A DNA stretch of 64,000 nt from positions 91,884,001 through 91,948,000 of the forward strand of contig NC_043003.1 of NCBI RefSeq assembly GCF_006345805.1. The letters run 5' to 3'. The notes below the pieces were generated by a model, which saw only the letters and a program-made list of their open reading frames with translations, was not told the DNA's origin and did no database searches. A program made the translations under genes and the position numbers. Every line of letters begins with the position of its first letter. Within the stretch, counting starts at the first letter, position 1. This stretch comes from Octopus sinensis. Its lineage: Eukaryota. Of the stretch, positions 13,089 to 64,000 are shown piece by piece.

Positions 13089-14016
13089 TATACATACATA
13101 CATACACACGTGTGTGTGTCTATGCATAGACATCTCTATATATGCAAAAACATACATAGAATAATGGTAAAAATCAAAGACACAACAGTCCTTATGATAC
13201 CAAAAATGGTAAAATGTTGTATACTAAATATATTAATTATGACCATATATTGTAAACATAGACAAGGATAAATATGAAAATTGAGAGATATAATATGTAC
13301 AAGAGTATATAGTAAAGCATGTGGACTATATGGAACCGCTGTTATGCGTATTAGTTAGATAGAAGTACTATCAAGGCATTAAACAATTAATAAATCATTC
13401 TCTCAACAAATATACAAAAACATATAATCAGAGTTAAATATAAATGTATGCACACATAACACACTCACATGTACATATATGCATACACACACACACACAC
13501 ACTTGCATACCAAAGCTGACATAAGAGGTCAATGCAGCCCTGCAGCTTACTGGATTCTGTCAAATTATCCAGCTCATGCCAACATAGAAAACGGATGTTA
13601 GATGATGATATATGTGTATAATGTCTGAGATTGGTTCAGTCAAAGTTGATTACTTTTATATGTAGTACTTAATGCAAAATATGAATATGGAATTTTAATT
13701 TCTTTTCAGTAATTTGTTTTATGATCATAGTATGAATTATGATATATATGTGCATGTATGTACATATACATATATGTATATATGTATCTTCATTATCATT
13801 GTTAAACGTCTGCTTTCCATGCTGGCATGGGTTGGATGGTTTGACTAAGGACTGGCTATCTGGGAAGCTGCACCAGGCTCCAATCTTATCTGGCAAGGTT
13901 TCTACAGCTGGATGCCCTTCCTAATACCAGCCACCCTGCACATTTTCTGATTTTCATTCAAATAGTGCTTTTTATGTGCCACTAGCACAGGAGCCAGTCA
14001 GGCAGCACTGGTATCT

Positions 14017-14508: not shown

Positions 14509-15600
14509 TTGAATAAAAAGTAAGCTAAGTTTTGAAGCATGAAATTCATCACAATATATTTCAACAATGTGAAAATTTTATTCATCAAAGTAAGTACCAT
14601 TATAATCAGTACATTTTTGCCAATGAGTTACAATTTTGTTTATTTTGGTGACATAAAAATCTGGAGTTCTGGAGCTGATGAACTCTTTGAATGCACTTTC
14701 AGCATCGGTTTGATTTTTGAACTCTTTCTGTTGATGGAAACCATCATAGAGCTTGTAACTGTGGTAGTCAGTAGGAGAAAAGTTTGGGGAATAAGCTGAG
14801 TGGGGAAGAACATCATAGCCAAGTTCCCTCAGCTTCTGGAGCATCCTTAGTGAAACGTGTTGTTGAGCATTGTCATGAAGGTTGACCGGTCTGGGATGAA
14901 GGAGTAGCAGATTTTTGTTCATTTTGGCAATTTCATGGCAATATGTTTCTGCAGTAATGGTTTTTCTGGGTTTTAAGAAGTTATAGTGAATGATTCCAGC
15001 AGTACACCACCAAACAGTCACCATAACCTTTTTGAAGGTTTAGGGAAGGTTTTCAGTGCTTCATTTTGGTCCAACCACTGTGAAGAACGTTTTCTATTAT
15101 TGTAGAGGATCCACTTTTCATCACAAGTTACAATACGGTTGAGAAATGGATCAGTTTAGTTATGGAGAAGATACAACAAGCAAATTTCATGTCTGCGCAT
15201 TTTCTGATTTTCATTCAAATCATGTGGTACCCATTTATCGAGCTTTTTTGATTTTCCAATCGCATGCAAATAATTGCAGACAGTTTTCTGGCTAATTTGA
15301 AGTTCTTTTGCCAGTTCTCAAGTGGTTTTACATGCATCTTTCTCAATGGCAGGCTTTAATTGACTGTCATTGGTGAGAAATGGGTATCTACTACGCTCAA
15401 GATCTTTAAGGTTCAGGTCTCCACTGAGAAATCGTTTAAACCATTTTCGAGCTGACCACTCACAGGTCATTTGCTCATCAAATGTTTTGTTGATGTTGTG
15501 AGCAGTTTCAGCTGCTTTACGTCCTTTTTTTGAAGTTGAATAGTAAAATTGCTCAAATATCGCGCTTTGACGGTCCCATCTCAGATGGTTGTAACAGCAG
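14509..15600 (-). mobile_element. Mariner (DD34D) transposon with near full-length but disrupted transposase (about 14578-15578)
   Basis: KAAETAHNINKTF (HTH), WVPHDL, TCDEKWILYNN, HDNA and YSPNFSPTDY motifs; 34 residues between the second and third Asp. In-frame stop and frameshifts present; terminal inverted repeats not found. Confidence 0.93.
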
Positions 15601-16490: not shown

Positions 16491-16944
16491 GAGACAGAGA
16501 CAGAGCTTGTATCAACATGCTTTTCAGATAATCCTGTTTGCTCTCTCTATTCATTGTCATTAGCAACAGTGTATACAGTTGGTGGCTGTAATGTGGAGAC
16601 ACTGATAACAAATGTGTAGAGCTGAATTTCTATGATAAAAGTTCTTATAGAAATCTAATCCCCAAATAATCTATCTCTAATTATGAATTACTTTATTGAT
16701 TTCTCAGAGACTGAATCATATCACTTGTTGTTACTGCTATTGTTGTAACTTTGGTTTTATTTCTTCATGTATCCAATCTCTCTTTCTCTCTTCTTTAGTC
16801 TAATATCATGTCTGCTGTTCTGCTGTAAAATCTAACGGCTATTTTTGATAAATTTTATGTTTTAAATCTCAATGATATGCAACAGCTATTTGGTCATCTC
16901 AGATATTTAATGATAATTAAAATGCACATGGCATTCAAGGTCTC

Positions 16945-23507: not shown

Positions 23508-23653
23508 GTATCCTGCAAGGTACTTCTGCTCTTTTGCTGGCATTTGATGAGTCTGAAGTCCGTAAAATAATTAGAGTATGCAAGAATGTACTGGAATATT
23601 TAGCTATAACTGAAGTTGTAGATAAGATGGAGGATTTGGTTACCTATGTCAAG
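23508..23653 (+). CDS. VCL: Vinculin exon: (G)[48 protein letters not shown]
   Basis: tttccag acceptor, GTAAGT donor; 146 nt, phase 1 to 0; follows a 20.8-kb intron; matches vinculin [25 protein letters not shown]. Confidence 0.97.
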
Positions 23654-25027: not shown

Positions 25028-25196
25028 AATCTCAGTCCTGTGCTTACGAAAATCATCAAAGAAGTGGATGCCCGTGAGAAGGAACTGACACACCAAGTTC
25101 ATCGTGATATGTTAATCCGTTCATTGGATCAGGTGAAGAATCTCACTCCTGTTCTCATCAGTGGAGTGAAGATATTCATTACTGCCAAAGAGACAG
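25028..25196 (+). CDS. VCL: Vinculin exon: NLSPVLTKIIKEVDAREKELTHQVHRDMLIRSLDQVKNLTPVLISGVKIFITAKET(G)
   Basis: ttttcag acceptor, GTATGT donor; 169 nt, phase 0 to 1; conserved ELTHQ motif. Not listed in the ORF track; translated by hand. Confidence 0.96.
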
Positions 25197-26717: not shown

Positions 26718-26869
26718 GTTCTGGTTTTATCGAGGCTCAGAAGAACCGTGACTATGTGGTACAGAAGATGTCTGATGAAATCCATGAGATAATTCGGGTG
26801 TTGCAGCTCACAACCTATGATGAAGAAAACTGGGATGCTGATGATTTGACTGTGATGAAGAAAGCTCAG
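26718..26869 (+). CDS. VCL: Vinculin exon: (G)SGFIEAQKNRDYVVQKMSDEIHEIIRVLQLTTYDEENWDADDLTVMKKAQ
   Basis: tcttcag acceptor, GTACTT donor; 152 nt, phase 1 to 0; EIIRVLQLT motif typical of the vinculin/alpha-catenin family. Confidence 0.97.
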
Positions 26870-31063: not shown

Positions 31064-31136
31064 TCAGCAATTGAAGGAAAACTGAAGCAAGCTAGTGATT
31101 GGCTACAAGACCCAGCAGCTTTGGTTGGCAGCGCAG
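31064..31136 (+). CDS. VCL: Vinculin exon: SAIEGKLKQASDWLQDPAALVGSA(G)
   Basis: gtttttcag acceptor, GTAAAA donor; 73 nt, phase 0 to 1; matches SIDSKLNQAKGWLRDP. Confidence 0.94.
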
Positions 31137-32462: not shown

Positions 32463-32611
32463 GTGACAAAGCCCTCCATCAAATTTTAGAAGATGCTCGG
32501 AAAATTGCTGAGAGGTGTGCTGATCCTGCTGAGAGAGATGCCATCATACGGAATGTGGGAGATATTGAATCCATGGCAAATAGTTTGGCTGAACTTAGGC
32601 AGCAAGGAAAA
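32463..32611 (+). CDS. VCL: Vinculin exon: (G)DKALHQILEDARKIAERCADPAERDAIIRNVGDIESMANSLAELRQQGK
   Basis: tacttcag acceptor, GTAAGG donor; 149 nt, phase 1 to 0; vinculin internal repeat. Confidence 0.96.
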
Positions 32612-35737: not shown

Positions 35738-35930
35738 GGTAGCAGTCCACAGGCCATGGCTTTAGCCAGAGAAATCCAGAATAAACTTGGCAGTTTGCAG
35801 CAGTTAACCCAGATGGGAATTGTTAACACAGAACGTAGTGGGATCCGTAAACCTGCTCCTACAGTATCTGGCAAGGTAGAACAAGCCCAGAGGTGGTTAG
35901 CTAATCCAGGACTTGATGATAAAGGACTTG
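35738..35930 (+). CDS. VCL: Vinculin exon: GSSPQAMALAREIQNKLGSLQQLTQMGIVNTERSGIRKPAPTVSGKVEQAQRWLANPGLDDKGL(G)
   Basis: tttttcag acceptor, GTAAGG donor; 193 nt, phase 0 to 1; GK[VI]EQAQRW motif. Confidence 0.97.
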
Positions 35931-37003: not shown

Positions 37004-37149
37004 GTGAACAAGCTACACGCATGGTTGTTGCTGACGGGCGCAAAGTGGCAGAATCCTTGACTGGACCACAAAGAGCAGAGCTCCTTCGTCTTTGTGATGA
37101 GACTGAAATATTAACCAATCAGTTGGCAGATATGATCCGAAGGGGACAG
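37004..37149 (+). CDS. VCL: Vinculin exon: (G)EQATRMVVADGRKVAESLTGPQRAELLRLCDETEILTNQLADMIRRGQ
   Basis: ttatccag acceptor, GTAATG donor; 146 nt, phase 1 to 0. Confidence 0.96.
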
Positions 37150-37873: not shown

Positions 37874-37966
37874 GGTAATACTCCCCAAGCTCAAGCATGT
37901 GCACGCCACTTATCTGAGAAGTTACATGCTCTGAAGAACAAAATTGGTGAAGGCCTTGTTAATCAG
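37874..37966 (+). CDS. VCL: Vinculin exon: GNTPQAQACARHLSEKLHALKNKIGEGLVNQ
   Basis: aatcag acceptor, GTATTG donor; 93 nt, phase 0 to 0; matches GESPQARALASQL. Confidence 0.93.
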
Positions 37967-38689: not shown

Positions 38690-38759
38690 GTGGCAGAGGA
38701 CTTCATTGATATGACCACCCCTCTGAAGCAGTTGAGTGATGCTGCAATTGTTCCTCTTG
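38690..38759 (+). CDS. VCL: Vinculin exon: VAEDFIDMTTPLKQLSDAAIVPL(G)
   Basis: ttacaacag acceptor, GTAAGT donor; 70 nt, phase 0 to 1; matches VSDVFSDTTTPIKLL. Confidence 0.95.
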
Positions 38760-40191: not shown

Positions 40192-40343
40192 GGGTCCCTG
40201 GCCGAGAACAAAAATTTGAAGAAAAGTCACGTAACTTTTTAAGTCAGTCAGCAAAACTTGCTGAAACTGCCAACATGGTGGCAACTGCTGGTGGCTGTGC
40301 AAACAAGAAAACTGTTGAGGCTATTTTTAGTACTTCTGCTCAG
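40192..40343 (+). CDS. VCL: Vinculin exon: (G)VPGREQKFEEKSRNFLSQSAKLAETANMVATAGGCANKKTVEAIFSTSAQ
   Basis: gtttctag acceptor, GTAAGA donor; 152 nt, phase 1 to 0. Confidence 0.96.
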
Positions 40344-41198: not shown

Positions 41199-41376
41199 GC
41201 CAATGACTTGTCTCCTCAAGTTGTAAATGCTGCCAAAATAGTTTTGATCAATCCTACTAACCAAGCTGCTGTTGACCACTTTGATCTTCTGAAGAAACAG
41301 TGGACTGAGAACATGGAGCGTCTACGGACATTGGTCGATGAGGCCACTGATACAGAAGCTTTTATTCTTGCCACTG
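41199..41376 (+). CDS. VCL: Vinculin exon: ANDLSPQVVNAAKIVLINPTNQAAVDHFDLLKKQWTENMERLRTLVDEATDTEAFILAT(E)
   Basis: tattacag acceptor, GTCAGT donor; 178 nt, phase 0 to 1; matches [25 protein letters not shown]...LVDEAID. Confidence 0.97.
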
Positions 41377-42882: not shown

Positions 42883-43080
42883 AACAAGGAATTCAGAAAG
42901 ACAAAGAAAAGGTTGAAGAAGGAATTCGAACCATCAATCCTCCAATAATCGTTACTAATGCTTCCAATATTGCTCGGCGTGCAAACCGTGTACTGCAAGT
43001 TGCTCAACAAGAAGCAGAGAACAGTGAAGATCCACAGTTTGTGGAAAAAGTTAATTCTGCTTCTGATGTCCTGAAATCTA
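42883..43080 (+). CDS. VCL: Vinculin exon: (E)QGIQKDKEKVEEGIRTINPPIIVTNASNIARRANRVLQVAQQEAENSEDPQFVEKVNSASDVLKS(T)
   Basis: cttttccag acceptor, GTACGT donor; 198 nt, phase 1 to 1; IARRANR and ENSEDP motifs. Confidence 0.97.
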
Positions 43081-45407: not shown

Positions 45408-45499
45408 CAATTACCCCAATGGTACAGGAAGCGAAGTCAGTCTCTATCGACCCCAAAGATCAGGTCGCTGCAAACAACTGGCGCAAAGCAAACAATTCA
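45408..45499 (+). CDS. VCL: Vinculin exon: (T)ITPMVQEAKSVSIDPKDQVAANNWRKANNS
   Basis: ttttaatag acceptor, GTATGT donor; 92 nt, phase 1 to 0; matches TISPMVMDAKAVA. The ORF track shows this segment in a different frame. Confidence 0.94.
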
Positions 45500-46691: not shown

Positions 46692-46806
46692 TTAATATCT
46701 GCAGTTGGCCAGGTGAGAAAATCTGTTATGGTAACACCAAAAGAGGACAACAGATACACTCAAGCCTTCCCACCCCCACCAGATATGTCTCAACTGAGTA
46801 TCTCAG
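46692..46806 (+). CDS. VCL: Vinculin exon, end of head and start of proline-rich hinge: LISAVGQVRKSVMVTPKEDNRYTQAFPPPPDMSQLSIS
   Basis: ttgttacag acceptor, GTAAAA donor; 115 nt, phase 0 to 1; FPPPP corresponds to the Ena/VASP-binding DFPPPPPDLEQL of vertebrate vinculin. Confidence 0.96.
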
Positions 46807-48231
46807 GTAAAAATATCTCAGAATATCAGATATGGGCAATATTATTTTCTGAAGTTTTAAACACCTTCTTTATTTGTATTACTGCTGGTTATAATGTCTT
46901 TGTATCTCTGATGCATATATTATTATTCCACACACATATAGTTGATGATACACTCTGTTTTCTGTTGCTGTAATTTTTTTTTTACATTTAAGCTCTTTTT
47001 ATTTTGTTTTCTTTGTACACCTGATACCACTTTTTTGGTTTGCATTTTAATAGTTTACTCCGTAGAAGAATCTTTTCTACAATATCACATTTATATTTGT
47101 GCATGTAATATATCTTCTGTACCTCTATGGCATATATATATAAATATATGCATGTGTTTGTATGTATATATCGATACTATGTATATATTATGTGTATTTA
47201 TGTGTATATAACTACTACATATATGTATTTTAAATGCTCATATCTGTGTTTGTATATGTACATAAGTGTGTGTGTGTGTTTGTAAGTGTACATATGTGTT
47301 TAAGTATGTCATGTATGTGTGTGTATATCTATATATCTATCTTTTTCTCTCTCTATATATATATATGTATATTATAATTGTATTCTGGTAGTCACATTGA
47401 CCATTTAAATCTAACATCTGTTGCTATATTTATTTATATTAGTATTTTGTAACATAAATTTACATAATCACATCATTTCTATTTTTATAAATTCATTATT
47501 GCTGTCTATATTGTATGTTTGAACCCCAAACATTATAATGTATTACCTGGATTTTCTATCTTTTATAGGCATTACTTTTTTTTTTATTTCTGTGTTCACT
47601 TAAAAAATTTTTTTTATTATTTTTCTCCACAGCATTGCATGAATTGTTTTATCACGTATCTATAATATAATTCTCTAATTAAACAGATGGAAACAGAATA
47701 GTACTCACATATTAACATATATGTGTACATATGCATACATGTGTACATGCAGTTTTATATATCTGTTGGTAATACAATCATATTTTGGTAGCCACATAAA
47801 CCAATTAAAACAACTATATGCTGCAATATTTAATTTTTATTATATTAGCATTTTGCAGTAAATATATCATCATTTCACATCCAGCTTCCATGCTGACATA
47901 GGTTCCTGATCTAATGCAAGTTTTTAACCACCAATTGTTAAAAGATGACAATGATGATATATTTGCAACCAAATGCTGTTCAAAGTTGATGATTACTCCA
48001 TCATTATTCAGTTTCTCACCATAAAACGTCTTTCATGCAGCAAAAATATATTCATAGTAACAGACTGAATTATAACTTCTGAAGTATTGGTAGAAATTCT
48101 ATAATCAATTGTGTCACTCATAGGAATAGGAGTATTGCTTCTATTAGTTTAGTAACAGAAGGTTCCGAATTTGAGTCTAGTCTGGAATAATAATAATAAT
48201 AATAATAATGATAATAATAATAATATTAATA

Positions 48232-48579
48232 ATGGTTCTGGGTTCAGTCCCACAGCATGACACCTTGGGCAAGTGTCTTCTACTATAGCCTCGGGCCAAC
48301 CAAAGCCTTGTGAGTGGATTTGGTAGACGGAAACTGAAAGAAGCCCATTGTATATATATATGTATGTGTGTGTATATGTTTGTGTGTCTGTGTTTGTCCC
48401 TCCAACATTGCTTGATAACTGATGCTGGTGTGTTTTTGTCCCCGTAAGCTAGAGGTTCAGCAACAGAGACCGACAGAATAAGTACTAGGCTTACAAAGAA
48501 TAAGGCCTGGGGTCAATTTGCTCGACTAAAGGTGGTTCTCCAGCATGGCCACAGTCCCATGACTGAAACAAGTAAAAGA
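48232..48579 (+). mobile_element. 5'-truncated SINE family A copy on the + strand
   Basis: Begins just before the B box ggttcagtccc and ends gactgaaacaagtaaaagaa; preceded by (AAT)n. Confidence 0.9.
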
Positions 48580-48586
48580 ATAATTA

Positions 48587-48890
48587 GAGCATAACAAACC
48601 AGACCTAGTGGTGGTGGGCAAGGTGCACCACATACTATATAATTGATATTGTGTGCCCCTTTGACCCACGATTAATCAAGAATGAAGGTGGAAGAATAGA
48701 CATATACAATCCTCTTAAGTACAAAATAGCCCAGTTATGGAAAATGAAGAATGTGAAGATAGTGCAATGTATCAGGAGGCATCAAGAGGAATATAAAGGA
48801 AATCTGAATTGAGTGCCCAGTAGAACTGTTACAAAAGGCTTACCTCCTTGGCACCAGAATAATAAAGGAAGTATTAATTTGTTGAAAAGA
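48587..48890 (+). mobile_element. Restriction-like endonuclease fragment of an R2-superfamily LINE
   Basis: HNKPDLVVV and, after a frameshift, IIDIVCPFDPRLIKNEGGRIDIYNPLKYKIAQLWKMKNVKIV: a PD...D pattern. Confidence 0.65.
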
Positions 48891-51104
48891 ACAGATAACA
48901 TGGTACTGTTGGCTGCAGGTAACAAGCCTGGTGCACATGCAAGACTCCAGGATTTCCAACAAAACCTGAGTTAAAAAGAATAATAATGATAATAATAACA
49001 ATAATAGTAATACATTTGATAATGGCCGGTGTTAACCCAGTTGAAATGTAGTATAGATATAAATATTAAAATATGTTTGTTTGTTTTTATTATTAAAGAT
49101 GAAGTTAATGAGCCTACATGTCTGAAATCTCCACTTATCTACAAATTATTTGACCAATTTTTTTCTTTCTTTTTCCATTTCTTTTTTCTTTTTTTTTCTA
49201 ATTCATTTCTGATTTTTAGAAAACATCATCAGCAGCAGCAATAACAAGTGCAACAATGTTATGAAATTTATTTTCTATTTGAGTTTATTTATTTTCATTT
49301 CAGATGCTACTTGTGTGTGTACATACATATATGTATGTGTTGTTTGCTTGTCTTTGTTGTACTTAATAATTTATGCTCAAGGCAGTGGATTGGCAGAATT
49401 GGTTGTGTCGAGCAAAATATTTGGTGGTATTTTGTGATAACTCTTAAGTCTCGAGTTCAAATCCCACCAGGGTTGAACTTTACCTTTCATCCTTCCATGG
49501 TTTAATAACATAAATACCAGTCTAGTAAGTACTGGGGTCAATGTAATTGACTATAGCCAACTCCTAAATTTAAGTCTTGTGTGCCTATGTTTCAAATTAA
49601 TAATTAAGTTATGCTGGTGTCCCTTTATTCCAGTCCTTGTGTACCTATGTTTCAAATTAATAATTATGTTATGCTGGTGTCACTTTAGTTTGTTGTCTGT
49701 TTGTGTTTTAAATGTGAATGTGAATTAAATGTGAATTTAATTAACATGCAATATTTGGTTGTAAGTGACAATGTATTGTTGTTTGTGATTATCTTTTTTT
49801 TTTACATGATAAAAAGGAGTGGAGGAACACAGCTCCTCATCTCCTCCAACTAATTCAACTTTTTTAGTACTTAACTAGAATGTGAGTTAAACATATGGAT
49901 AAGAAATGAGATTGAAACAACTTCATTCAAGAGCTATTCTCTGCTATTCCATTTTTGTGTGAGAGCAGGGTTCAGTCCTTAAACCCCAGACTATCAACTT
50001 GTTCATTAGTTATTTCTGTTTTCACTGACCAGCTAGACTGATTGACAGATAAACAATTGGTCCAACTTATCTAAAGCACACTCTGACCCAATCTTATTGG
50101 AAGTAGCAGGATGTCTATTGTAATTCTTGTCAGTGATACAAATACAAACGTCTGTGATAGTTATTTATTTTGAAGAATAGTCGTTGAGAGAATGGCTAAA
50201 ATATTGAACTATTGCCCTTCAATCCCTTGAGTTTAAACACTACAGCCAACACTATTTTTGTCTCCTTGGAGAAAACAAACTCACTTTACTTTAGCATACA
50301 CCAGCTGACCATAGATATTATATTCATATATTTATATATGAATGTGTGTGTGTGTTAGCTGGTGGCTTTGAGATTTTGACAGCATGATTATTTATTTTTA
50401 GAATGACATTCAAGGGTGTGATAGGCCAGATCTGGACATTTTTGAAGATGAAATGAGTAGAATATTTGGGTTGGATATGGCCAGTTTAAATGCTAAAGGG
50501 TTAATGTCAGCAGATTATTTAACTAATGCTAGTTTCTAGTTATATCTTCAAGCATAAGCATAAGAGCAGTTACCCTGGAGCCCCATGAGTCTAGAGGACC
50601 CAGTGTTAATCTATGTTTACTGGTGGTTGTGTAAGTTGGGACCTTCCAGTGTATTATTTTGCATGGAGGATATATAATGTTCCATATTAACATGTTAAAT
50701 TTTACATGAAGTGAGCTGATAACTTTAGTCCACATGAAGAGAGCTGTATTTACCGTCATAAACTTTATAGAGGTTCACCATCAGTTTGATGATGTAGAAA
50801 TTTAATATTGTTTGAGCTTTGATAAGATACTGAAACAGTTTTACACTTCTAAAGAGTTGATCCTTGAAATGCTACTGTATGAGGGAGAGATAGAAAAAAA
50901 GAAGAAACTGAACTAGCTGGGTTGAAAACAAAATTAAATTGAATGTCTGCCATTGTAAATAACAAAGAACTTTCCTGTCTGTCTTGTTGTCTCTTTTAGT
51001 TGGTTGCTCTCCTTCCATTTTGATCCTCCCACATTTTTTTCTTCCACCTTGCTTATTGTTATTGGTACTGCTCTAATACAACCTAACGTTTCTGTTCCCT
51101 TCAG

Positions 51105-51305
51105 CTAAGGGTGGCAGCCCTAAAGCTCCCCTGTCTCCACGCAGGGTTAGAGTGCCTGTTCAGATGGCACCTCCAACAACAACGCTCACCTTTCACAATA
51201 GCGCTTATGACCCACTTACACCACTTATCAACCAGCTGTCCAGTTGTGTCCCCACACCTCCAAGTGGTCCTTCCAGAGATGACTGTACATACATATATAA
51301 TAGAG
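51105..51305 (+). CDS. VCL: Candidate cassette exon in vinculin hinge: (A)KGGSPKAPLSPRRVRVPVQMAPPTTTLTFHNSAYDPLTPLINQLSSCVPTPPSGPSRDDCTYIYNR
   Basis: CTAAC branch point at 51083-51087, pyrimidine tract and ttcag acceptor; open in phase 1; AG|GTAGTA donor gives 201 nt. An alternative weak donor after 51284 gives 180 nt, also in frame. GC-richer than flanks and Pro/Ser-rich. No homology evidence. Confidence 0.7.
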
Positions 51306-51613
51306 GTAGTAAACTAGTCAAGTGTTGTTTGCATGGAGTTTAAGCTCAGACACCAAATGTCTTTTTTTTCTCCCTTCTTTCAGTTGCACTCACTCCTCAA
51401 GTTCACTTGTCCACTAAGTTAATTCAAATTAGCAATTGTATTATCATTTTTATTATTATTACTACTAATACTACTACACATTAGGTATATTTTTGATTAC
51501 TTTTTATGTAAATTATATCATATTATCATAGTTGTATCACAGAGGAAATTTTCCATGCCTAAATGCAAGTGTTTTTTTTTTACCTTGTTTATTCTACTTC
51601 AACAACATTTCAG

Positions 51614-51649
51614 ATGAAGGAATCCCTAATCTTCATCCCATATTAAGTA
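51614..51649 (+). CDS. VCL: Candidate 36-nt cassette micro-exon in vinculin hinge: (D)EGIPNLHPILS
   Basis: Long T-rich tract and atttcag acceptor; GTAAGA donor at 51650; open in phase 1; length divisible by 3. Confidence 0.45.
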
Positions 51650-51659
51650 GTAAGACATG

Positions 51660-53030
51660 TCGGGGATATCCGGGCAAGAGAGTTTGGAAATAGCTTGAGA
51701 ATTTATTTACTTTCAAGTATGATGAGTCGCACAACTTATTGGATCATAGTCACTTTTGAGCAGATTGTCTTCATACAGCATATCTTATGAAACCCATAAA
51801 TTATAGCTAATATAACTCACCAATACAAGCTACTAAATCACAGAATGATCTAGTTGAGTAACCTTTGGGATACCATGAAAAGACCAGTGAGAGCCATTTT
51901 CAAACAAAAGCCAAAGAGAATGAGGTGTAGGAGGTGAAACAAATCTTTCAAGATTGAGTTGAGGACTGTGGTGGAGGACTTGGGAGATATGAGCATAACT
52001 GGGCCTGGGAGCAAACTCACAACAGGACTTTCAGCGATGCTGGGTGGAGATCTTGTCATCCAGTCCAGTACTACATGGAGAGCAGGAGGGATTAAAAATA
52101 GGAAAAACTACTAATTTTAGAGTCTTCAAGCTATAAACTGTATTTACTTTTAGTAGATTGCTGAACTTGAGGAAACATGAATGTGTGATATTGTATCCAA
52201 GGAAGAAATCATTGCATATATTTATTTTGTTTTATGTGACTATGGACAAGTGAGCCAATAGTTTCCTAACTTCAGCTAAGTTTTGTTTCCCATGATGAAT
52301 TTAAAAAAAAAATTTGTACTTAATATTTTTTTGAATGCATGTAGCATGGTGTTGAAAATGAGAAATTCCATAATTTTTTCTTTTATCATATTATTTCAGA
52401 AGTATGTTTAATTAATAACTCATTCTGTTTATGTAAAACGTTTATCTCTCATGATATTTCAATTGAGCAAGCCTTTTACAATAATTATTAATGCTTAATA
52501 CATAGTAAAATAATAATAGTAGAATGTAAACATATATACAAACTCATGTACATGGACCTTATAGGGAAAGGTGCAAAGGCTAAGCGTACTGAAGTGTACT
52601 TTCAATATTCCTGGTAATATTTGTTCATTTTTAAGTATGATGACTCTCACAATCTATTGGGTCAGAGTCACCTCTGATTTTAATCTCCATGCAGCATATC
52701 TTATGATACACATAAACTATAGCCAATGTAGTCACTTGTCAACACAAGCTACCAAATCATGGAATGAGCCAGTTGAATAACCTACAGGATACCATCACTC
52801 TAGAATGGTAGAATATGCTCATTTATGTGGTACACATGTCCATGAACAGATCAGTGGTAGGCTGTTTCAAATGGAAGCAAGACAGGGAGTGCAGGAAGTG
52901 AAACAGATCTCTCAAGATAAGGTTAAGGACTGTGGAAGAAGACCTTGTTGGTATGGGTGTAACCTAGCCTGGAAGCAGGCTCATAACATGTAGAGTTTGC
53001 AACCATGCTGATAACTCTTGTCATTCAGCT
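51660..53030 (-). mobile_element. Two diverged CR1-type reverse-transcriptase fragments covering the same segment (about 51660-52070 and 52560-53030)
   Basis: Mutual similarity (aagtatgatga, cagcatatcttatga, gtgaaaca.atct.tcaagat, aggactgtgg). Minus translation SPVVSLLP...TTVLNSILKDL...GIPKV resembles RPIALL...VIN..L...DISKAFD. Confidence 0.5.
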
Positions 53031-53328
53031 GGTAATAATTAGTAGATTATTAATCAATTTCTGTTTATTTTCATGCCAATAAATAATTACTTATAGTCCT
53101 TTATTTGGCTAAAGACAGTCATGTATAGAGGACTTATAATAATTTGTAAATGAAACAAAAATCTTTTTGGGTACTCAAGCAATATTTTCAAAACCTGATT
53201 GTGGTTAACAGTAAAAGAAAAGAAAAAAAAAATTTAATATCCTTGTTGCATTTATATATTCTTAATTATGACAAGAATTTCAAGGGTGACAGGTTGCCTG
53301 TAAACTATAAGTTAGGTCTCTTGTCTCA

Positions 53329-53370
<42 letters not shown>

Positions 53371-54313
53371 ATATATATAAACTTTTCTGTAATTATATTA
53401 ATTGTATAACTTTTCTGTTTTCATTATTAATATCTGATATTTCACCTGTGTCTCTTCTTTCTTACTATTGTATATCAATCATCAAATCTGTTTTACAATG
53501 AATGACTCTGGCTAATATATTGAAACCCTTCTGCTTTGAGAAATATTTGAATGTTTCAGATACTGGTTTACTGATTTTGTTTGTTTTGCTTTCATTTCTT
53601 ATCTATAAATATATATATATATACACACACATATACACACACACACAAACATGCACACAGATATGTATTTTATATATATTATACATTATACATATCTATA
53701 TGTGTGTGTGTGTGCTTGTGTGTTACTTCACATTTATCTAATGCATATGTTTAAAGTACATATACACAATGACTAGAAGGCTATGATAATTCATATAAAA
53801 GATAGCATTTAATGATATAAATAACTCCTGGCTATCTCATCAAAAATTATAAGAAGACAATAATGTTTTATGCATATAAATGTATACAAAAAAAAAAGAA
53901 GAAAAAGAAAGATATTCCTTCTTTCTCTCTGTACAGAATTAAAAATATTACTATTTAATGTTAATTTATTTTAATTTAAAACAAGCTGGTCCACCAGTAT
54001 TTTAAGTTAGAGCAATATCATTCTTTTTTCTTTCTTATATCCTGAACTATGCATTAGATAAAATTGAAAATATGCTGTTCTTGCAAATGGTATTAACACT
54101 TAAGCATATTTCAAAGTATTTTTAATACCATTTGCATCTACGATATAATGATTACTGCAGAATGGTTTGCATTCTTCATGTATTCATGTTTTCAATGTTT
54201 AAAATAACTTTCCTTGTGTGACAGGGTTTCAAACCCTCCCTACCTTTTTTCATTGAAAATTCATTAAATATTGATATTTCTCTTGTTTATTTCAAACAGT
54301 GTTTCTTCTTACA

Positions 54314-54314
<1 letters not shown>

Positions 54315-54387
<73 letters not shown>

Positions 54388-54526
54388 CATATCTACCTAT
54401 CTATCTATCTATCTACATATCTACCTATCTATCTATCTATCTATCTATCAACCTACCTACTTATCTATCGATCAATCAATCGATAGATAGATAATTTAGA
54501 TAGATAGATAGATAGATAGATAGATA
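54315..54526. repeat. (TCTA)n array followed by an inverted (TAGA)n array
   Basis: Directly visible; switch point at 54462-54489. Confidence 0.95.
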
Positions 54527-57057
54527 CACACACACACAACATAGATGAATGATAAATTCATACACATATGTTTATAGATACATACACACACACACGTATA
54601 TCATCATCATTTAATGTCTGTGTTCTATGTTGGCATGGGTCAGGTGCTTTGACAGGATCTGACAAGGAGCCAGACTACATTGAGCTTCAATATCAGCTTT
54701 GGCATGGTTTCTATTGCTGGATGCTCTTCCTAATGTCAATCACTTTACAGTGTGTAGTGGGTGTTTTTTTGTAACACTGACACTAGTGGAGTTGCAAGAC
54801 AAACAAAAAACACCCCCCACCTTCCTGCAACAGAGTAGGAATCAACAGCCAGCTTTGTGCCAGGTGTTGACAGGCTAAAGTATGATGCAGACACACATAC
54901 ACAAAACCAAGAAGCAATATATGGTATATTTATTCAGTGTGGATATATACTATTTGAATTTGTTAGGCCTAAGGATGGTGAATTTGATTAAAATCTTTTT
55001 CTCAAGATATCTTCTTCTGTGAGAGGGTTCATAAATACATACACACAGGCCCACATATATAATCATGTATAATTATTTACAATTATTTCTCATCTGATAA
55101 TCATTTGAAACACTTCCTCTTCATTAAGGCATTTTATCATAAACATCCTTGCAAACAGGGTGGGAGGTGGCATTAGGAAGGGCATCTAGCCATAGAAAAT
55201 TGTAATTAATCTTGTTGGATTTCTGCAAGCATGGAAAGGTAAACATCAAAGTGATGATGATGATGGTAATGATGATGCATTATGGAAGAGAGCGCAATGG
55301 TCTTGAAGGATCATTGTAAAATGTTCACTCACAAATTTTGTTTTGGTTGTACCATGTAGAAAGCACTGGTGCTGATGCCATGTAAAAATCACCCTGTACA
55401 CTCTGTGGAGTGGTTGGTGTTAGGAAGGGCATCCAGCCATAGAAACCAAGTCAAAGCAAACTACGGAACTTGGTGTGGCCCCTGGCCTTGACAATTCCTG
55501 TCAAGCAACCCAACCCATGCCAGCGTGGAAAATGGATGTTAAATGTTGATGATGATGAGGGTATATATAGAAACCATGAACTAGATACGTGCTAGTGAGA
55601 TATTTTTATAAATACAGTTATTTTTATATCTGCAACATACAATAATAATCAACCTGACCATAATCATATAATACAACTAAGATTTTACGCAAATAATTAA
55701 TAATTATTTTACTATCATACATGGTTGATAATTTATGATATTGCTTCAAAGGTTAAAATTTTATATAAATTCTGTGATTTCTGTGGTTAAGAATGTAACT
55801 GCCTCACACAATACATTTTGACTGAAACTAATTTCCTCATGGCTGGAGGGAATTCATATGGATTATTCTGAATGGTTCCCTCTACAGCATAAATCTGCTG
55901 AAGTAAGCTGATCAGAACTGCTTAGCAAGAACAAACAACTGCAACTGCAAAAGAATAAATTGCCCTCTCACTGTATTTGAACTGTTACTCTGTACATTCT
56001 AAACTTTCTAGTGTAATACTCATAGATTATTAAATAGCATACCAATCATGATATGGAAGATCTTGATTTGCTTTTATTAAAGTATTTTTTCAAATATTAT
56101 TAACTTCTATTTTGGTATGTGAATATTTTGTATGTTTTCAGGAACACTGGTACTTTTATTCTGCACTTGCTTCATACTCACAAATGAGTTCTTTTTTTCT
56201 TTTTTTTTTATCCTGTTTCCTTCCCTCTTATTTTGTATTCAATTCATTACTTTCAACTTACTAATTGTACTTAATTATTATTTATTTCATAATCATTTGT
56301 TTTTTGTTTTTTTTGTAACTATTTTCCAAATTATTTTTATAACTTAATAATGATAATATTAAAAGTAAAAAAGCAAACTGCACGATATCAATTAATTGCT
56401 AAGATTTTAATCTGAATCATATTAGGTATAATTAGTACAAAAGTAGAAAATTTAGACAGAAATGAGCAACAGACCTACTGACAAGGTATCTGCTACACAT
56501 ATTTTCCTTGTGTGCTGCTCTTTCTGTCCCAAATTTGTGTTTATAATGTCTAATGGTCAGCTGTGAAGTATATTAAAAATTTGATCTTTCTTTAAATAAA
56601 AATTATAGTAACTAAAATTTTGTATGTATGCTAAATATGAGCACAAATTTATATATTAATAACTGAAAGGCCAACGTGTACAAGCTACTGATCACTTCTG
56701 TTGATACAGACACCTGTAAGGTAGAGGTAGTAGAATAGTGCAGGAAAAAGAAGTCTGTAAATGCTAAGAGATAATCATGATAAGCATGGGAAAAAGGGGA
56801 GAATTAGAAATAATACTCATAAACAAGGTAGGAAGCAAGTTGATGTAACAAACCATGAGATAATCTGAGATAGGAAATTTTTCTAATATTCTGCACTGTG
56901 AGAATTCGAAATTTGCAGTGTTCCTAACTTCACAGTAGTGAATTGGTATAAAGTAGTATGTCACCAAAGAGAAATGTGTCTGAAAAGAGCTATGTTAATC
57001 ACATGTTAGTTATTCAATTAATTAGGTAGTACAGTATGACATTATCATTCTTAATAT

Positions 57058-57349
57058 CTAGTTAAGCAGATCAGGCCGAAAATGTCGCTAGAAGCTAGGA
57101 TCACCAAGCATAGATTCGCATATTTTGGTCATATTATGCGGAGAAAATCCTTGGAGAAGGACATCATGCTCGGAATGGTCAGTGGCAAGAGAGGGAGAGG
57201 CCGACTAAGAACCCGCTGGCTTGACACCATCAAGAGTGATACCGGAATGGACATAGCCAATCTGAAAGAAGCGGCCCAGGATAGAACTGACTAGAGGACA
57301 CTGATCCATCTAGTAACCGAGAGTCGACTTCGACTGAGTGGATAGAGAG
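57058..57349 (+). mobile_element. 5'-truncated RTE (BovB-like) LINE 3' end
   Basis: LVKQIRPKMSLEARITKHRFAYFGHIMRRKSLEKDIMLGMVSGKRGRGRLRTRWLDTIKSDTGMDIANLKEAAQDRTD*RTLIHLVTESRLRLSG*; a single TAG where Trp is expected. Confidence 0.9.
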
Positions 57350-58021
57350 AGTAGAGCTGTATTGTTAAGTGCTAAAAGATTTTAATGCGTTGGGGAAAAG
57401 CTATTATAGAAGGCCTGAAACTGATGGACAAAAATTTCAAAGTAGCTGAGAGAGTTTTCAGCAATGTGGGTTATAAATATGATTACCCTGCATAAAATGT
57501 TAAAAACATTTTAGTAAAGTCACTAAATGAGATGTTTGGCCAATTGACTGTAACATAATTTCGTATATGACAGATATACAAGGAGTCGTTAGCAGTAAAT
57601 ACAGATATGAGACCAAGTCCATGATCAAACTCAGCTGACATGCTAGATGTGGTTGAGAGTTTCTGTTACACATGTGATATAATTTTTGCTACATGTAAAT
57701 ATTGCAAATAGTTATTAGAGTAAGGAAAGAAGGTAGGATTGTTGTCGAGAGAGATATTACTTATAGCATTCAAAGATTAGAAAGGATAGGTAACAAATGA
57801 CCGAGACATATCAGTAATATACTTTGCAGCAGAAGTGTTCGAACTATGCCGACATTAAAAGCAGAAGATAAGGACAATAACAATCAGGAGTAACTTGATG
57901 AAATGTCAATATTAATGTAATTCTAAACTTTGGCTGCTTCTGTATTTCATTACTGTTACACTTGAGTTCATATAAATACATATATCCAGGCATATCTATA
58001 GAGATACACATAGCCAGCCAA

Positions 58022-58061
<40 letters not shown>

Positions 58062-58162
58062 GGATACACACACAAGCATACATACATATACATTGTTGAG
58101 CACTTTCCCCTTTCCTATTCCCTTTGTATGTGTATGTATTTTTGTGTACATCTGTATATCAG

Positions 58163-58201
<39 letters not shown>

Positions 58202-58209
<8 letters not shown>

Positions 58210-58582
58210 ATATTTTGGAATGGTCATTTTGCCAGTTTAGCCAATAAAAACACACGCACTATATATTTGGTGTTATTTTTCTTCAGTGTTATTTATTTTT
58301 TACATTAATCTTAATCTTATTTCGGCCAGAGTTCTTTCGAAACACTCCTGTATTAGAAATACAAAATGGCTGACGGTTAGTAAGGAGAGACACAAATAAG
58401 TAAGAAGAAAACAAATGACCACTGATGCGGTCACAGCGGTGTGACAAAAGAACTCTGGCAGAAATAAGATTAAGATTAATGTAAAAAATAAATAACACTG
58501 AAGCAAAATAACACCAAATATATAGTGCGTGTGTTTTTATTGGCTAAACTGGCAACATGACCATTCCGAAATATAACAATAT
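58202..58582. mobile_element. Foldback/MITE-like element with 136-bp terminal inverted repeats and a 109-bp spacer
   Basis: 58202-58337 matches the reverse complement of 58447-58582 at 132/136 by manual alignment; (TA)n on the left. Superfamily not assignable. Confidence 0.9.
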
Positions 58583-58618
58583 CTGTTTCAACACACGACT
58601 TCACATAAAAAATCTTGC

Positions 58619-58624
<6 letters not shown>

Positions 58625-58662
<38 letters not shown>

Positions 58663-58737
58663 GTATGTATGTATCTGTGTGTGTATATATATATGTGTGT
58701 GTGTGTGTATATATATATATGTGTGTATATATATATA

Positions 58738-58777
<40 letters not shown>

Positions 58778-58835
58778 GTGTATATATATATGTGTATATA
58801 TATGTATATATATATATATATATATGTATAAATAA
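58625..58835. repeat. Long TA/TG low-complexity tract; similar tracts at about 7780-7830, 11745-11780, 43855-43935, 44165-44320, 53335-53380, 62995-63045
   Basis: Directly visible. Confidence 0.95.
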
Positions 58836-59456
58836 TAATAATAATAATATAAAGGGTAAAATCATAAATGATTTTTACCAAGTGGCCAGTGTCTATTTTT
58901 CAGTGTTTGGTGAGGCGCAAGCCAAGCCCTTGTTATAATTCTATATATATATATATATATATTGATGTGCTTACATCAATATATATGTTCACATATGTGC
59001 ATATGTATATACACAATATCTTACCCATAACTACAAGTTGAACAAAATACAAGTTTTGTTGGATATATTGTTAGGGATAAAACTTTATATATGCATGTGT
59101 GCGTACTCATACACACATGTATTTAATACTTTCGTTGGTAGTAACTTCAAAGTTTGGCCTTAAATGTTTTAATAATAATATTTTAATAAATTATATACTA
59201 CATAGCATTATAAAACAACATCAATAATTATAATTATTATTATTATTGTTGTTGTTATTATTATTATTATTGCAACAATAATCTAAAACTTACTTTTCCA
59301 GTGTATCTTGTAAAATAAAGTAGTAAATGTAAATAAACAAAATTTAAAAAATACATTCACAACAAAATGTTTTTCCAATGAATTTAATAAATTGTTTTTA
59401 TTAATTTTAATATTTTTCTTTTCATTTCATAAATTTGATTTGGTTACTTTTTACAG

Positions 59457-59501
59457 TCCCTGATCAACATGCTATGGATGGAAGAAGTGAGGTCCTAGAA
59501 G
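59457..59501 (+). CDS. VCL: Candidate 45-nt cassette micro-exon in vinculin hinge: (V)PDQHAMDGRSEVLE
   Basis: Pyrimidine tract and tttttacag acceptor; AG|GTATTT donor; phase 1 to 1, stop-free; balanced composition within very AT-rich flanks. Confidence 0.6.
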
Positions 59502-59571
59502 GTATTTTAGTAAAAAACTAATCTATGTTTTACTTGCACTAATCTATGTACCTGATGAGGTGTGTGTGTAC

Positions 59572-59615
<44 letters not shown>

Positions 59616-60962
59616 ATTCCAACATACTTATATAGTTATCTACATAAATGCATGTGTAGAAACTCCATCAAATTGATACTCACATGCAAAAGGAACCATA
59701 TGGAATGAAACATCTGTATGTCATTGGATTAAACTGGCTTATGCTTGTACATGTGTTCCACTCTCTAAATATCAGTAACTGAAATCTAGTGACAAGCATT
59801 GCAAGATGACTGAAATCAAACAAGCAGTTGGTGTAGCTGCCAGAGTACCTTCTCTTAGACTTTTCCCATCAGAGATTTGAACAAAGCATATTTACACACA
59901 ACTGGATAACTGTTGACTCTCAGGAGTTCATTCTCACTTTAACAGGCCTTGTTTTTTGATCCTGCAACATCATCATTTAACGTTTGCTTTCCATACTGTC
60001 ATAAGTTGGACAGTTTGACTGAGGACTGATGAGCCAGAGGCTGCACCAGGCTCAATCTGATCTGGCAAAGTTTCTACAGCTGGATGCCCTTCCTAACACC
60101 AACCACTCTGAAAGTGTAGTGGGTGCCTTTTACATGCCATCAGCACGAGGGCCAGTCAGGTGGTTCTGGCAATGACTATGCTCAAAAGGTTTTTTTACAT
60201 GCTACCTGCATGGGAGCCAGTCTGGTGGCACTGGTAATGACCATGCTCAAATGTTGTTTTTCACGTGACACTGGCACATGTGCCAGTAAGGCAACATTGG
60301 CAATGATCACGTTCCTCACCAAGCAGGCTGATGGAGTTGTCACTGACAAACCAGTCATACAAGTGGTCCTAGATTACACACACAAAAGTGCATGAATAAA
60401 TACATTTCTTAGATATCAGTTGTATTATTGTTATGCACTCAGTCTTAGAATTAATTTTTGAACTGATAACCAAACTCTAACAAGATTACTTACTGGGACA
60501 ATCTTTTTCAGTTATGTTGAGAGAGAAAATTGAAACTCTCTCTATTTTGTTTTTGTTCTTTTAAATAATTTAATGAGGATTTCTCTAAATTCAATTTTTG
60601 TTTTGTTAAAACTTTTTCTGTAAATTTCAATGTTTATCAATTAATTGTTATTAATAATGATCATTATAATTCTTATTGTTACCAACATTTGATTGCTATT
60701 ACAATTATACGGAGTTACTAATTATCTGTTTCATTTAATTTTGTTTTTTCTTCCTTTTTCTATAGTTTAATTTGTTAATTGGATAAAATAATTTAAAACA
60801 AATTTATCACAAAATATTCTTTCACCGAATGAATTCATTAATCAGTATGTTTGTTGTTGTTGTGTGTATATATGTTACATATTATTTGTGTTGATGTTTG
60901 ATATTGCGTTTCTTTTTGCTATTAATATTGCACTTCAATTTGCTGACTCCATTCATTTGCAG

Positions 60963-61082
60963 CTACCGTACAGAGGGAACAACATTACGCTCCAGAGCAG
61001 AAGAGTCCCATGTTTGTTCCTCCTCCCCCAGTGCTGCCACCACCACCACAGGATAGCTACAATTATGGATATGATTACAGAG
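60963..61082 (+). CDS. VCL: Candidate 120-nt proline-rich cassette exon in vinculin hinge: (A)TVQREQHYAPEQKSPMFVPPPPVLPPPPQDSYNYGYDYR
   Basis: CTGAC branch point at 60943-60947 and tttgcag acceptor; AG|GTTCTT donor (weak); phase 1 to 1; two PPPP runs. The ORF track shows a different frame. Confidence 0.75.
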
Positions 61083-62765
61083 GTTCTTTAGCACTTAGTG
61101 TTCCTTAGAATGGCCTGAGTGTGATGTTTGCATGTTAGCTCTTTCAAAATTCTTTCTTACTAAAACTGGCATACTCATTTTGAAAAAAAAAAAATTCTTT
61201 TGAAATTACCTTTCAAGCAAAAAATGAATTAACTACCCCCCCCCCCCATCAGATCCCTTTTTATTACTTCTACTACCATTATTACTCTTACTACTATTAC
61301 TGCTGTTGCTACCTTAACCTGTGCTCCTTTTTCCTCAAAATTTGTGCTCAAGTAATTCTTTGGAATTCCTTTACATCTTTGAAATTATTTCCATTTTTCT
61401 CATTACTTTTTGTCTTTAAACAATCTTTTTATTTTTTCCCCAATTTTTAGTTTAATTCATAGAATGACAGAAGTAAATTTCATTGACAGGGCAAAATAAT
61501 GAATCATAATATATTCCATTTACCAACTGAAGCTCATACATGTTTTGTGACTGAGTACACAAGATGTGAATTTACATACTTGCTAGATCTATAGTTTGCT
61601 GTCAGTGCTGCACTCATCTTTTAGAACAAGCACTGCTCATTTACATGTTTAGTAGTCCTTAAGATATGAATCTACCTACTTCAGTCTCTCTGAACTTAGG
61701 CCTATAGTTTGCTATCAGAGCTGCACTCATCTTTTACAGTGAGCATCATTCATATACATGTTCGGTGGTTGAGTGCTTATGATATGAATCTGCCTATTGC
61801 AGTCTCAAATCATAGGAAAAATAAAAAGAGTTTATATTTATCCATAAATATCTTCTAGAACATCTGCATATTCTAAATCCCAGTTTCTTCGTGTAAATGC
61901 AATTGCCTAACTTAGTTGTGTGGTATGGTTGCCAAAATACTTCCCAAGTGAAATGGTGGAACCTCCCTTCTTCTAGGTTTTATTTTACATAACCAAACTG
62001 TATGGATAGGTAACTAATACTAGTTCCATTTAATAGTTGAGTATTTAACCTTTAAAATACATGCATAAAAAATTTATCCTCATCATCATATCCCCCTTAC
62101 CATGCTTGCAATAGAAGGCACTTGTCCAAGGTACAATGCAATGGAACTAAACCTGGAACCATGTGGTTGACAAGCAAACTTCTTAACTAGATAGCCATGC
62201 TTGGAAATGATTCGCTTCATTTTCCAGTTTTTTGTATTTACTATTTGCTCTCAAACCATTTATAGATTTCTTGGTTTCTCCTATTTCATCTGTCAAAATT
62301 AATAGTAGCTTTAATTATGTTTTGAAATTGAAATAATGGGGATAATATTTAAGTAGTCTTTTTTACTAACCAGATGATGTTATCCCTGAAGGGGATATAG
62401 TTTTTACAAGATAGTGTAGAAATCACTACTTCTACCATCACTCTCTCTCAAGAAAAGCAGACTAAAGATATAAAGCTATAGGTGACTTATAAACATTTCA
62501 AAGATGTTGATAAATCTAATTGATCAATCCATTAAATATTTTTCTGTTCTTAAGAGGGCGTGTCCCATAACACTGAGAATGAATAATATATATAATGTCA
62601 GTACAAGACATGTTGTTATATGATATTATCTTGCATGTTAGTGTACATCAGAATAGAATTCTATATAGATATAATAGAACTCTTCTTACTTACAAAAAGT
62701 GTATAGGTACATCAAAAGAGGTGATGTCAATTCAGTTATTGACTGCTTTATGTGTGTGTGTGTGT

Positions 62766-62804
<39 letters not shown>

Positions 62805-62997
62805 AAATACTGTTTTGCATGTTGGAGAATACATCAGACTTAGAATTGTATATAGATATGGTGTAACTCTTTACCCTCACACATATTGGGATGTGTACTG
62901 AGAAGTTATATCAATAACAATATACTTAATTATAAATAGTAGTTGAATTTGGTATGTCTCACATATTATACCAAAACATTTATTACACATTATATAT

Positions 62998-63043
<46 letters not shown>

Positions 63044-64000
63044 TATTCCATAGAATATAGATGCATTTTGTTTTTCATAGTTTTTTTTTTTACTTTTTGC
63101 ATACTTAGCTGTTGTATGAGTGAATTAGTTATTTTTTGTAAATTTTAGTTCTGAAAATTCATAGTAGAAAGTATATGTAATGATGTACTTACATATTAAA
63201 TGTTGTATTTATTACTAGTACCCTTCTTGTGAATAGTATGTTTTATTTATTATAAGTTTATGTAGATTTATTAGCATTTATATAGATTTATTATTTGTAT
63301 TTTAACATTGATTGTAGAAGTTAAATGGTGTTATGTAACTATTATTAGTTCAACCCCTTTTTCATATTCAACTGTCCTTGAATCAGTAAATCAGGTCCAT
63401 TGTTAATACATTTAAAAGAGAGTGTTCATAGATTAACAAATTGCAAATATTTGAGTTGAAAGAATTTTTTTTATTAATAGATCATAGGTGTGTATCTTGT
63501 CTTTGGCACAACTCTGTATCCTTAACAAAGAAATTTAGCTCCATCAATGCCTCTGTCCACCTGGCCACAGCTATTTATGTAGCTTGCAGTAGTGAGCTTA
63601 CATTCCCTTCTACCTTGGCAAAATCTATAATAAACTGATAATGTTCCACCTCTAGGAGAGAGTGTTACATCTCGCTGATGCTTAATAACACAGAAACTAA
63701 TATAATTTCTCTCGTCCTTATACATTTTTGTAATATGTTTGATTCAAGTATACAGACAAATATCACTAAATCTGACTATTGCTGATTGCATAACCAAGCC
63801 CTAGTGTTGTTCTCAGCAAGATCTATTTGAGAGAGTTACAAGAAGTGATCTATAGTCTAAGGTTCAATCCCTTACTCCAACATTGTCAGGTTAAACATGT
63901 AGCATTATTTATTTAACATTTAATTCCTAAAACAGTCTGCTCTTGTGGAAAGTTTCTTTAGGCATTTCCGTTTTGTTTTTAGTTTCAACTGGAAAAATCT

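Follow-up and report, generated by a model that had tools for sequence, protein, structure and literature searches.

A stretch of 64,000 nucleotides (nt) from Octopus sinensis (contig NC_043003.1, positions 91,884,001 to 91,948,000; hereafter the window) was analysed, and its + strand was found to carry an invertebrate vinculin gene. Human vinculin residues 49-855 mapped in order to positions 2463-46806 by tblastn with an approximate human query. The vinculin hinge is a docking region for Ena/VASP, vinexin/CAP and Arp2/3, and its length sets the possible separation of head and tail. Here we describe four short segments (a to d) in the interval that follows the hinge exon with the FPPPP motif. 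Candidates c and d are probably conserved, ordered phase-1 cassette exons, which lie in a long intron between the FPPPP exon and the next hinge exon with the motif APPRPP. Candidate a is perhaps a third exon of this kind, and b would be a product of chance.

Results

The FPPPP exon and the interval behind it

The FPPPP exon (Table 1) ends in ...AFPPPPDMSQLSIS (...FPPPPDMSQLSIS), followed by a single G before gtaaaa, which confirmed that it leaves in phase 1 at 46806 as the initial annotation had read it. Three exons of the gene, the FPPPP exon among them, were used in a protein search, which returned exon-sized open reading frames (ORFs) of invertebrates with at most 79% identity and no cephalopod protein or transcript. 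Twelve genomic loci around exon-sized ORFs in invertebrate contigs were then compared, of which L001-L007 cover the head side of the hinge and L008-L012 the region of the next hinge exon. In each of the eight loci that extend to it (L001-L007 and L011), the FPPPP exon ends in ...FPPPPDMSQLxI(S/A) plus G. The constitutive exon that follows encodes (x)APPRPPLP..APPRPPPPETDDEDE..FPxPQxNQPIM (also APPRPPLP...PPRPPPPETDDE...NQPIM), was entered in phase 1 in each of the five loci examined, and ends in ATG/gt (the slash marks the exon boundary here and below), phase 0.

Neither a tail exon nor the canonical APPRPPLP hinge exon was found in 46807-64000 by tblastn with human vinculin and by a hinge-exon search, in line with the failure of the initial annotation to recognise any later hinge or tail exon in these 17 kb. 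The APPRPP exon of the window gene, and with it the tail, is placed, from the sequence, beyond base 64000, and the 17 kb after the FPPPP exon would be the first part of the long intron between two constitutive hinge exons. The FPPPP and APPRPP exons lie unusually far apart, and this holds for compact genomes as well: the distance is 8.4 kb in L011 and some 23 kb in L007/L008, compared to mostly shorter lengths of about 0.1 to 7 kb for the other introns of the compact loci.

All four segments are preceded by AG and followed by GT, are divisible by three in length and are stop-free in phase 1, exactly where they had been proposed. Their splice scores are modest, and the scores are approximate since the splice-site matrix is rough. 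The donor scores of the candidates (1.3-4.7) are lower than those of all but one of 13 confirmed exons (4.5-11.8).

Candidate d

Candidate d matched the exon at 19442-19540 of L004 (ASLRRDQHMAPPVPPPPVPPPPQDAFGYYGGYY) with E = 1.2e-8 (tblastn) and an identical cag/C...G/gt phase-1/phase-1 structure, and the d-type exon of L010 with E = 1e-6. Homologues were found in a total of six loci (L004, L008, L009, L010, L011 and L012) and in one mRNA-derived protein (P0079). With composition-preserving shuffles, p was < 0.0005 against L004, L010 and P0079, 0.002 against L009 and 0.02 against L008. The homologues have in common a core of (A/V)PPPV-PPPP, which is followed by a Tyr/Phe-rich end (alignment A1). 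Judged by sequence comparison, d is a real, conserved, frame-preserving hinge exon.

Within d, VLPPPPQD corresponds to [FL]PPPP with an acidic flank, the class I ligand pattern of EVH1 domains; d is a putative Ena/VASP EVH1 ligand at the level of this pattern match only. A strong acceptor-like site is located inside d at 61032 (score 8.8, phase 1), where it is made by a CCN-rich coding run, and a shorter in-frame d could be produced from it.

Candidate c

The exons at 17973-18035 of L001 and 3003-3065 of L012 encode VPDQFADETEGPPIER(A/V)(R/H)GLE and are of the same type as candidate c. All three start with ag/T(T/C)CC(A/T)GATCA, end with ...LE G/gt and are in phase 1 on both sides (alignment A2), and the shuffle test for c gave p = 0.0065. 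In L012, 2.6 kb separate the c-type exon from the d-type exon downstream, and the two are thus in the order of c and d in the window. The order VP exon, d-type exon and APPRPP exon was found in L008, L009, L011 and L012, and c likewise precedes d in the window. In L009, L008 and L011, the exons at the same relative position as c are short phase-1 exons that start with VPD, VPN or VPP and carry LPPPP-type motifs; that of L008 contains DLPPPPPDFFD, an EVH1-ligand pattern by pattern match only. Considering these agreements, c is very probably a conserved hinge exon. A stronger alternative donor (59486, score 8.0, phase 1) would give a 30-nt version of c, and the end at 59501 is favoured because the L001/L012 exons end in LE.

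A third conserved phase-1/phase-1 hinge exon type, named H1 (DPYTTGPTKTMPPPPLVPSQDY...VYNSP...FVPSQ; about 59 residues), follows the FPPPP exon in L001-L004, with the pattern …PPPP.VPSQ(D/E)(Y/F)…VYNSP.SS.(R/K)FVPS. No counterpart of H1 was detected in the window by a profile search in all reading frames, in which the best match was d at E = 2.3. Small conserved blocks of L001/L002 downstream of H1 were rejected as exons, being full of stop codons, and tblastx of L004 against L005 gave low-complexity matches only.

Skipping and inclusion in other invertebrates

The FPPPP-type exon is joined directly to the APPRPP exon in three records. P0086 is a protein model of the gastropod Bulinus truncatus and reads ...FPPPPDMSQLYIS/AEGAPPRPPLP..., and P0063 (Logan transcript) and L014 (JGI transcript) both skip everything between these two exons. 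The mRNA-derived protein P0079 contains a d-type insert, EHRPVFHAPPPPPSPPQDYNPDGDY, and no VP-type exon. In the long vinculin mRNA L013 (JGI contig Ga0170475_116174933), 27 additional residues, DPRRRTKSPLTSQAGPDLGRILRESAR, stand precisely at the junction of the FPPPP-type and APPRPP exons; this insert is a further cassette exon type, unrelated to a-d. In L015/P0056, another different sequence stands upstream of the APPRPP exon. Since some mRNAs include and others skip exons of the hinge intron, such exons are optional elsewhere.

The intron flanks were compared between related loci. In the alignments of L001 with L002, similarity ends at the borders of the constitutive exons, whereas H1 is preceded by about 550 nt of conserved intron; in those of L001 with L012, the c-type exon is followed by about 90 nt of conserved intron. 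These conserved flanks suggest regulated splicing of the hinge exons, and the weak donor of d, as a hint, would fit it. It is unlikely that c and d, perhaps with a, are real exons that are constitutive in the window animal and always included together. The conservation of the d type across loci would fit any functional exon, and no skipping transcript was seen from the window species; against constant inclusion stand the three records that skip (one protein model and two transcripts), the d-type insert of P0079 that lacks a VP-type partner, the weak donor of d and the conserved intron flanks in relatives.

The copepod-like (by sequence) JGI transcripts L019, L020 and L025 and the proteins P0057, P0060, P0112 and P0064 have the APPRPP exon and tail under an N-terminus that is not a vinculin head. 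This N-terminal region is long (…ELDAQIMDIQTQFE.ELESL…SDDEGTYQA.DIVFD…), and the sibling transcripts L018, P0085 and P0061 have a normal vinculin head. The arrangement suggests an alternative upstream unit that may use the same hinge intron. In L008, the tail exon …CERIPTIGTQLKILSTVKAT… is present in two copies at 13570-13641 and 16789-16878, one of which is divergent (…CERVPTIATQLKILSTYRCT); it may have arisen by duplication, be used in a mutually exclusive manner, or be in decay.

Chance controls and candidates a and b

For the controls, the thresholds of the splice matrix were set to let all four candidates through. In 46807-64000, 27 symmetric AG..GT segments were open in phase 1, compared to 28 in phase 0, 23 in phase 2 and 24 on the antisense strand, and another large intron had a similar density. 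Since segments of this kind are as numerous in the wrong phases and on the antisense strand, the AG/GT and open phase-1 features alone do not discriminate, in keeping with the caution in the initial annotation that short symmetric pseudo-exons also arise by chance. That all four segments are such pseudo-exons in a repeat-filled long intron is nevertheless scarcely credible. It would account for these equal counts and for the low splice scores, and it is refuted for d, which matches orthologously placed exons with E values down to 1e-8 and an identical phase structure; c agrees with L001/L012 in start, end, phase and order.

A dispersed repeat family with long open frames (…HGHSQMTETSKRVKE…) was found in up to about 10 copies in the window and gives rise to several chance pseudo-exons in the controls. 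Candidates a and d are the first and fourth highest peaks of guanine-plus-cytosine (GC) content in 46807-64000, where other peaks include repeats and one retroelement-like ORF. Both are outside the within-window repeats and are the sole long proline-rich open segments across the 64 kb. No tandem repeat was found to overlap the candidates, Pfam assigned no family to a and d, and tblastx of 46807-64000 against L001/L002 gave microsatellite noise only.

Segments like a (acceptor at least 5, donor at least 4.5 and at least 150 nt) are rare, with only two other places in about 62 kb, counted over two strands and three phases. An exhaustive phmmer search of a returned four matches among 1.84 billion proteins, all of them multi-stretch matches in long unrelated proteins, which were regarded as spurious. 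Candidate a was also rejected as a counterpart of H1 (shuffle p about 0.4-0.6) and as a relative of the L013/L015 mRNA inserts (not significant). The 180-nt alternative of a (51126-51305), which the initial annotation had offered, did not hold as its acceptor is poor (-5.8). The chances are about even that a, as a candidate, is a lineage-specific hinge exon.

For b, only chance-level matches were obtained in the twelve loci, and chance alone would supply some 25 segments like it, from which it is indistinguishable. Candidate b is therefore unlikely to be a real exon and is probably a chance pseudo-exon. The proposed array of phase-1 cassette exons in the hinge was thus supported for the conserved architecture and for c and d, which have homologues, and not for b, which is chance-like; a, which has none, is a plausible candidate only. 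Likewise, comparison of the peptides with vinculin loci of other invertebrates (the initial annotation had advised tblastn against those of cephalopods and molluscs) was positive for d in six loci and for c in L001/L012, and negative for a and b in the twelve loci. That the four segments are all cassette exons used independently, with as many as 16 hinge isoforms, is very improbable: in its favour, each of them preserves phase 1, and a has fair splice sites and an outstanding composition; against this, b is no different from the chance segments, a has no detectable homologue, and nothing in the data speaks to independent use. The figure of 16 isoforms and the tissues proposed with it in the initial annotation are speculation.

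Other features of the gene and the window

The exon at 45408-45499, which the initial annotation did not mention, was missed by the human query and was recovered with the orthologous exons of L003/L007 (tblastn E about 8e-6). Many orthologous exon ORFs of other invertebrates carry Pfam PF01044. One vertebrate head repeat has no counterpart in the window gene (tblastn with human vinculin), which agrees with the six-bundle head of invertebrate vinculin (PMC5201009). Two transposon remnants lie in a 21-kb intron, and an open frame at one GC peak of the hinge intron resembles the C-terminal region of non-LTR (long terminal repeat) retrotransposon ORF2 proteins. A scan of the window (1-64000, both strands) against Rfam gave no family at gathering score.

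Table 1. Positions of the vinculin exons, the hinge candidates, related exons of other loci and further features (window coordinates unless a locus is named)
Feature	Encoded sequence	Position	Strand	Remarks
Vinculin exons		23508-23653, 25028-25196, 26718-26869, 31064-31136, 32463-32611, 35738-35930	+	Junction search
Vinculin exons (continued)		37004-37149, 37874-37966, 38690-38759, 40192-40343, 41199-41376	+	Junction search
Constitutive head exon	EQGIQKD...SASDVLKS	42883-43080	+	Exit phase 1; tblastn with human vinculin, junction search
Constitutive exon (ITPMVQEAK...)	(T)ITPMVQEAKSVSIDPKDQVAANNWRKANNS	45408-45499	+	Entered in phase 1, left in phase 0; boundaries read from the sequence
FPPPP exon	LISAVGQVRKSVMVTPKEDNRYTQAFPPPPDMSQLSIS + G	46692-46806	+	Exit phase 1; orthologues in L001-L007, L011
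Candidate a	AKGGSPKAPLSPRRVRVPVQMAPPTTTLTFHNSAYDPLTPLINQLSSCVPTPPSGPSRDDCTYIYNR	51105-51305	+	201 nt; phase-1/phase-1 open; acceptor 5.1, donor 4.6; 18% proline
Candidate b	DEGIPNLHPILS	51614-51649	+	36 nt; acceptor -0.7, donor 4.3; GC 0.33
Candidate c	VPDQHAMDGRSEVLE	59457-59501	+	45 nt; phase-1/phase-1; very probably the conserved VP hinge exon type (VPDQ...LE)
Candidate d	ATVQREQHYAPEQKSPMFVPPPPVLPPPPQDSYNYGYDYR	60963-61082	+	120 nt; phase-1/phase-1; conserved polyproline-tyrosine hinge exon type
d-type exon		L010 5605-5733		129 nt; symmetric phase 1, few kb upstream of APPRPP exon
d-type exon		L012 5671-5778		108 nt; symmetric phase 1, few kb upstream of APPRPP exon
d-type exon		L009 7206-7286		81 nt; symmetric phase 1, few kb upstream of APPRPP exon
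d-type exon		L008 4558-4662		105 nt; symmetric phase 1, few kb upstream of APPRPP exon
d-type exon		L011 8375-8452		78 nt; symmetric phase 1, few kb upstream of APPRPP exon
H1 exon		L001 12568-12747; L002 18272-18448; L003 16616-16789; L004 about 13742-13920
Retroelement integrase fragment		9031-9417	-	Pfam rve, E = 2e-8; within 21-kb intron
Mariner-type transposase remnant		14581-15039	-	Pfam Transposase_1, E = 2.3e-15; same 21-kb intron as integrase fragment
79-codon open frame	…FGHIMRRKSLEKDIMLG…GRGRLRTRWLDTIK…	57055-57291	+	One GC peak of 46807-64000; no Pfam match
Dispersed repeat copies		48232-48583; about 4111-4260, 6545-6682, 12726-13268, 55349-55558, 62108-62247		Within-window comparison

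Discussion

The reading that c and d are conserved and ordered cassette exons of the hinge intron was weighed against several points. The scores and the exon map are based on an approximate splice matrix and an approximate human query. The records of skipping and of inclusion are from different species other than that of the window, and not from one animal, and P0086 is a predicted protein model and not a sequenced mRNA. The donor of d is weak (score 1.3). Candidate c is short (15 residues), its sequence similarity is significant only against one lineage (L001/L012), and the VP exons of L008, L009 and L011 share with it no more than their position, their phase and the first two residues. For candidate a, homologues beyond chance were found neither in the twelve loci nor among 1.84 billion representative proteins, and its second + frame and its - strand are open as well. 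With no homologue and several open frames, a may be a GC-rich non-coding patch. All of these weigh against the reading; even so, we infer that c and d would be used optionally in the window species too.

The mechanism that we propose for these cassette exons depends on their shared phase. The exons of the series end in G and are entered in phase 1, so any combination of them leaves the frame intact. G is the first base of every junction codon, which explains why the exons start with A, V, D or E. The disordered linker between head and tail would become longer by inclusion. In the case of d, inclusion would add PPPPVLPPPPQD, a PPPPVLPPPP stretch with an LPPPP-acidic pattern of the EVH1-ligand type, and this insert would follow the Ena/VASP-binding FPPPP site and precede the SH3/Arp2/3-type APPRPPLP/PPRPPPP sites. 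A bolder form of this proposal is possible and is put forward tentatively: the VP mini-exon and the polyproline-tyrosine exon may form a two-exon optional module that has been kept across distant invertebrates and by which linker length and docking sites would be switched in a regulated way, with a as a lineage-specific third exon and eight or more isoforms. The additional docking sites in that case may be for Ena/VASP, profilin or SH3 domains, which would make the module a hinge counterpart of metavinculin.

To our knowledge, metavinculin is the only well-studied splice variant of vinculin, and it alters the tail. Its insert is encoded by exon 19 of the vertebrate VCL gene and adds 68 residues within the tail after ...KWSSK, between tail helices. 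Metavinculin is a muscle-enriched vinculin isoform (PMC3365496, PMC6726196). Like the candidates described here, it is produced by a frame-preserving optional vinculin exon that leaves the head and tail folds undisturbed. It differs in that it has a single tail insert in vertebrates, whereas the invertebrate gene would have several small hinge exons before the APPRPPLP exon, with no sequence similarity to that insert. Being located before the APPRPP...NQPIM exon and unrelated in sequence, the candidates are not metavinculin-type inserts.

The constitutive vertebrate hinge (FPPPP, APPKPPLP and PPPRPPPP) is a disordered linker that likewise combines an EVH1-type FPPPP site with polyproline/SH3-type stretches, and the invertebrate FPPPP and APPRPP exons are its homologues. 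It differs from the present case by the extra polyproline-tyrosine and VP-type exons, which are placed between the two constitutive motif-bearing exons. No optional hinge exon of vertebrates turned up in our full-text literature searches, which were not aimed at vertebrates, and no description of such exons was found in those on how the vinculin hinge is spliced in invertebrates or cephalopods. The isoform models of genome databases may already contain these exons.

Similar arrangements are known from other systems. In Enah/Mena, a member of the Ena/VASP family (PMC2898656), small optional exons in the disordered regions of a focal-adhesion actin regulator give combinatorial isoforms; the gene is another one, the exons are unrelated, and the likeness in mechanism is by analogy only. 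Short tail-only vinculin isoforms annotated in other invertebrates (for example P0096, the 221-amino-acid Vinculin CDK13448.1 of C. elegans) likewise originate in the long hinge intron, their start being immediately ahead of the APPRPP-type exon. They differ in that their production requires a first exon or promoter inside the gene, whereas all window candidates have acceptors, as internal exons do. The general kind of arrangement, frame-neutral cassette exons in the disordered linker of an adhesion protein, is a familiar one. If the conserved hinge exons are indeed optional, invertebrates would have a different route to tuning the same protein, and the exons would provide natural variants of linker length and motif number for studying the role of the hinge in vinculin activation and adaptor recruitment.

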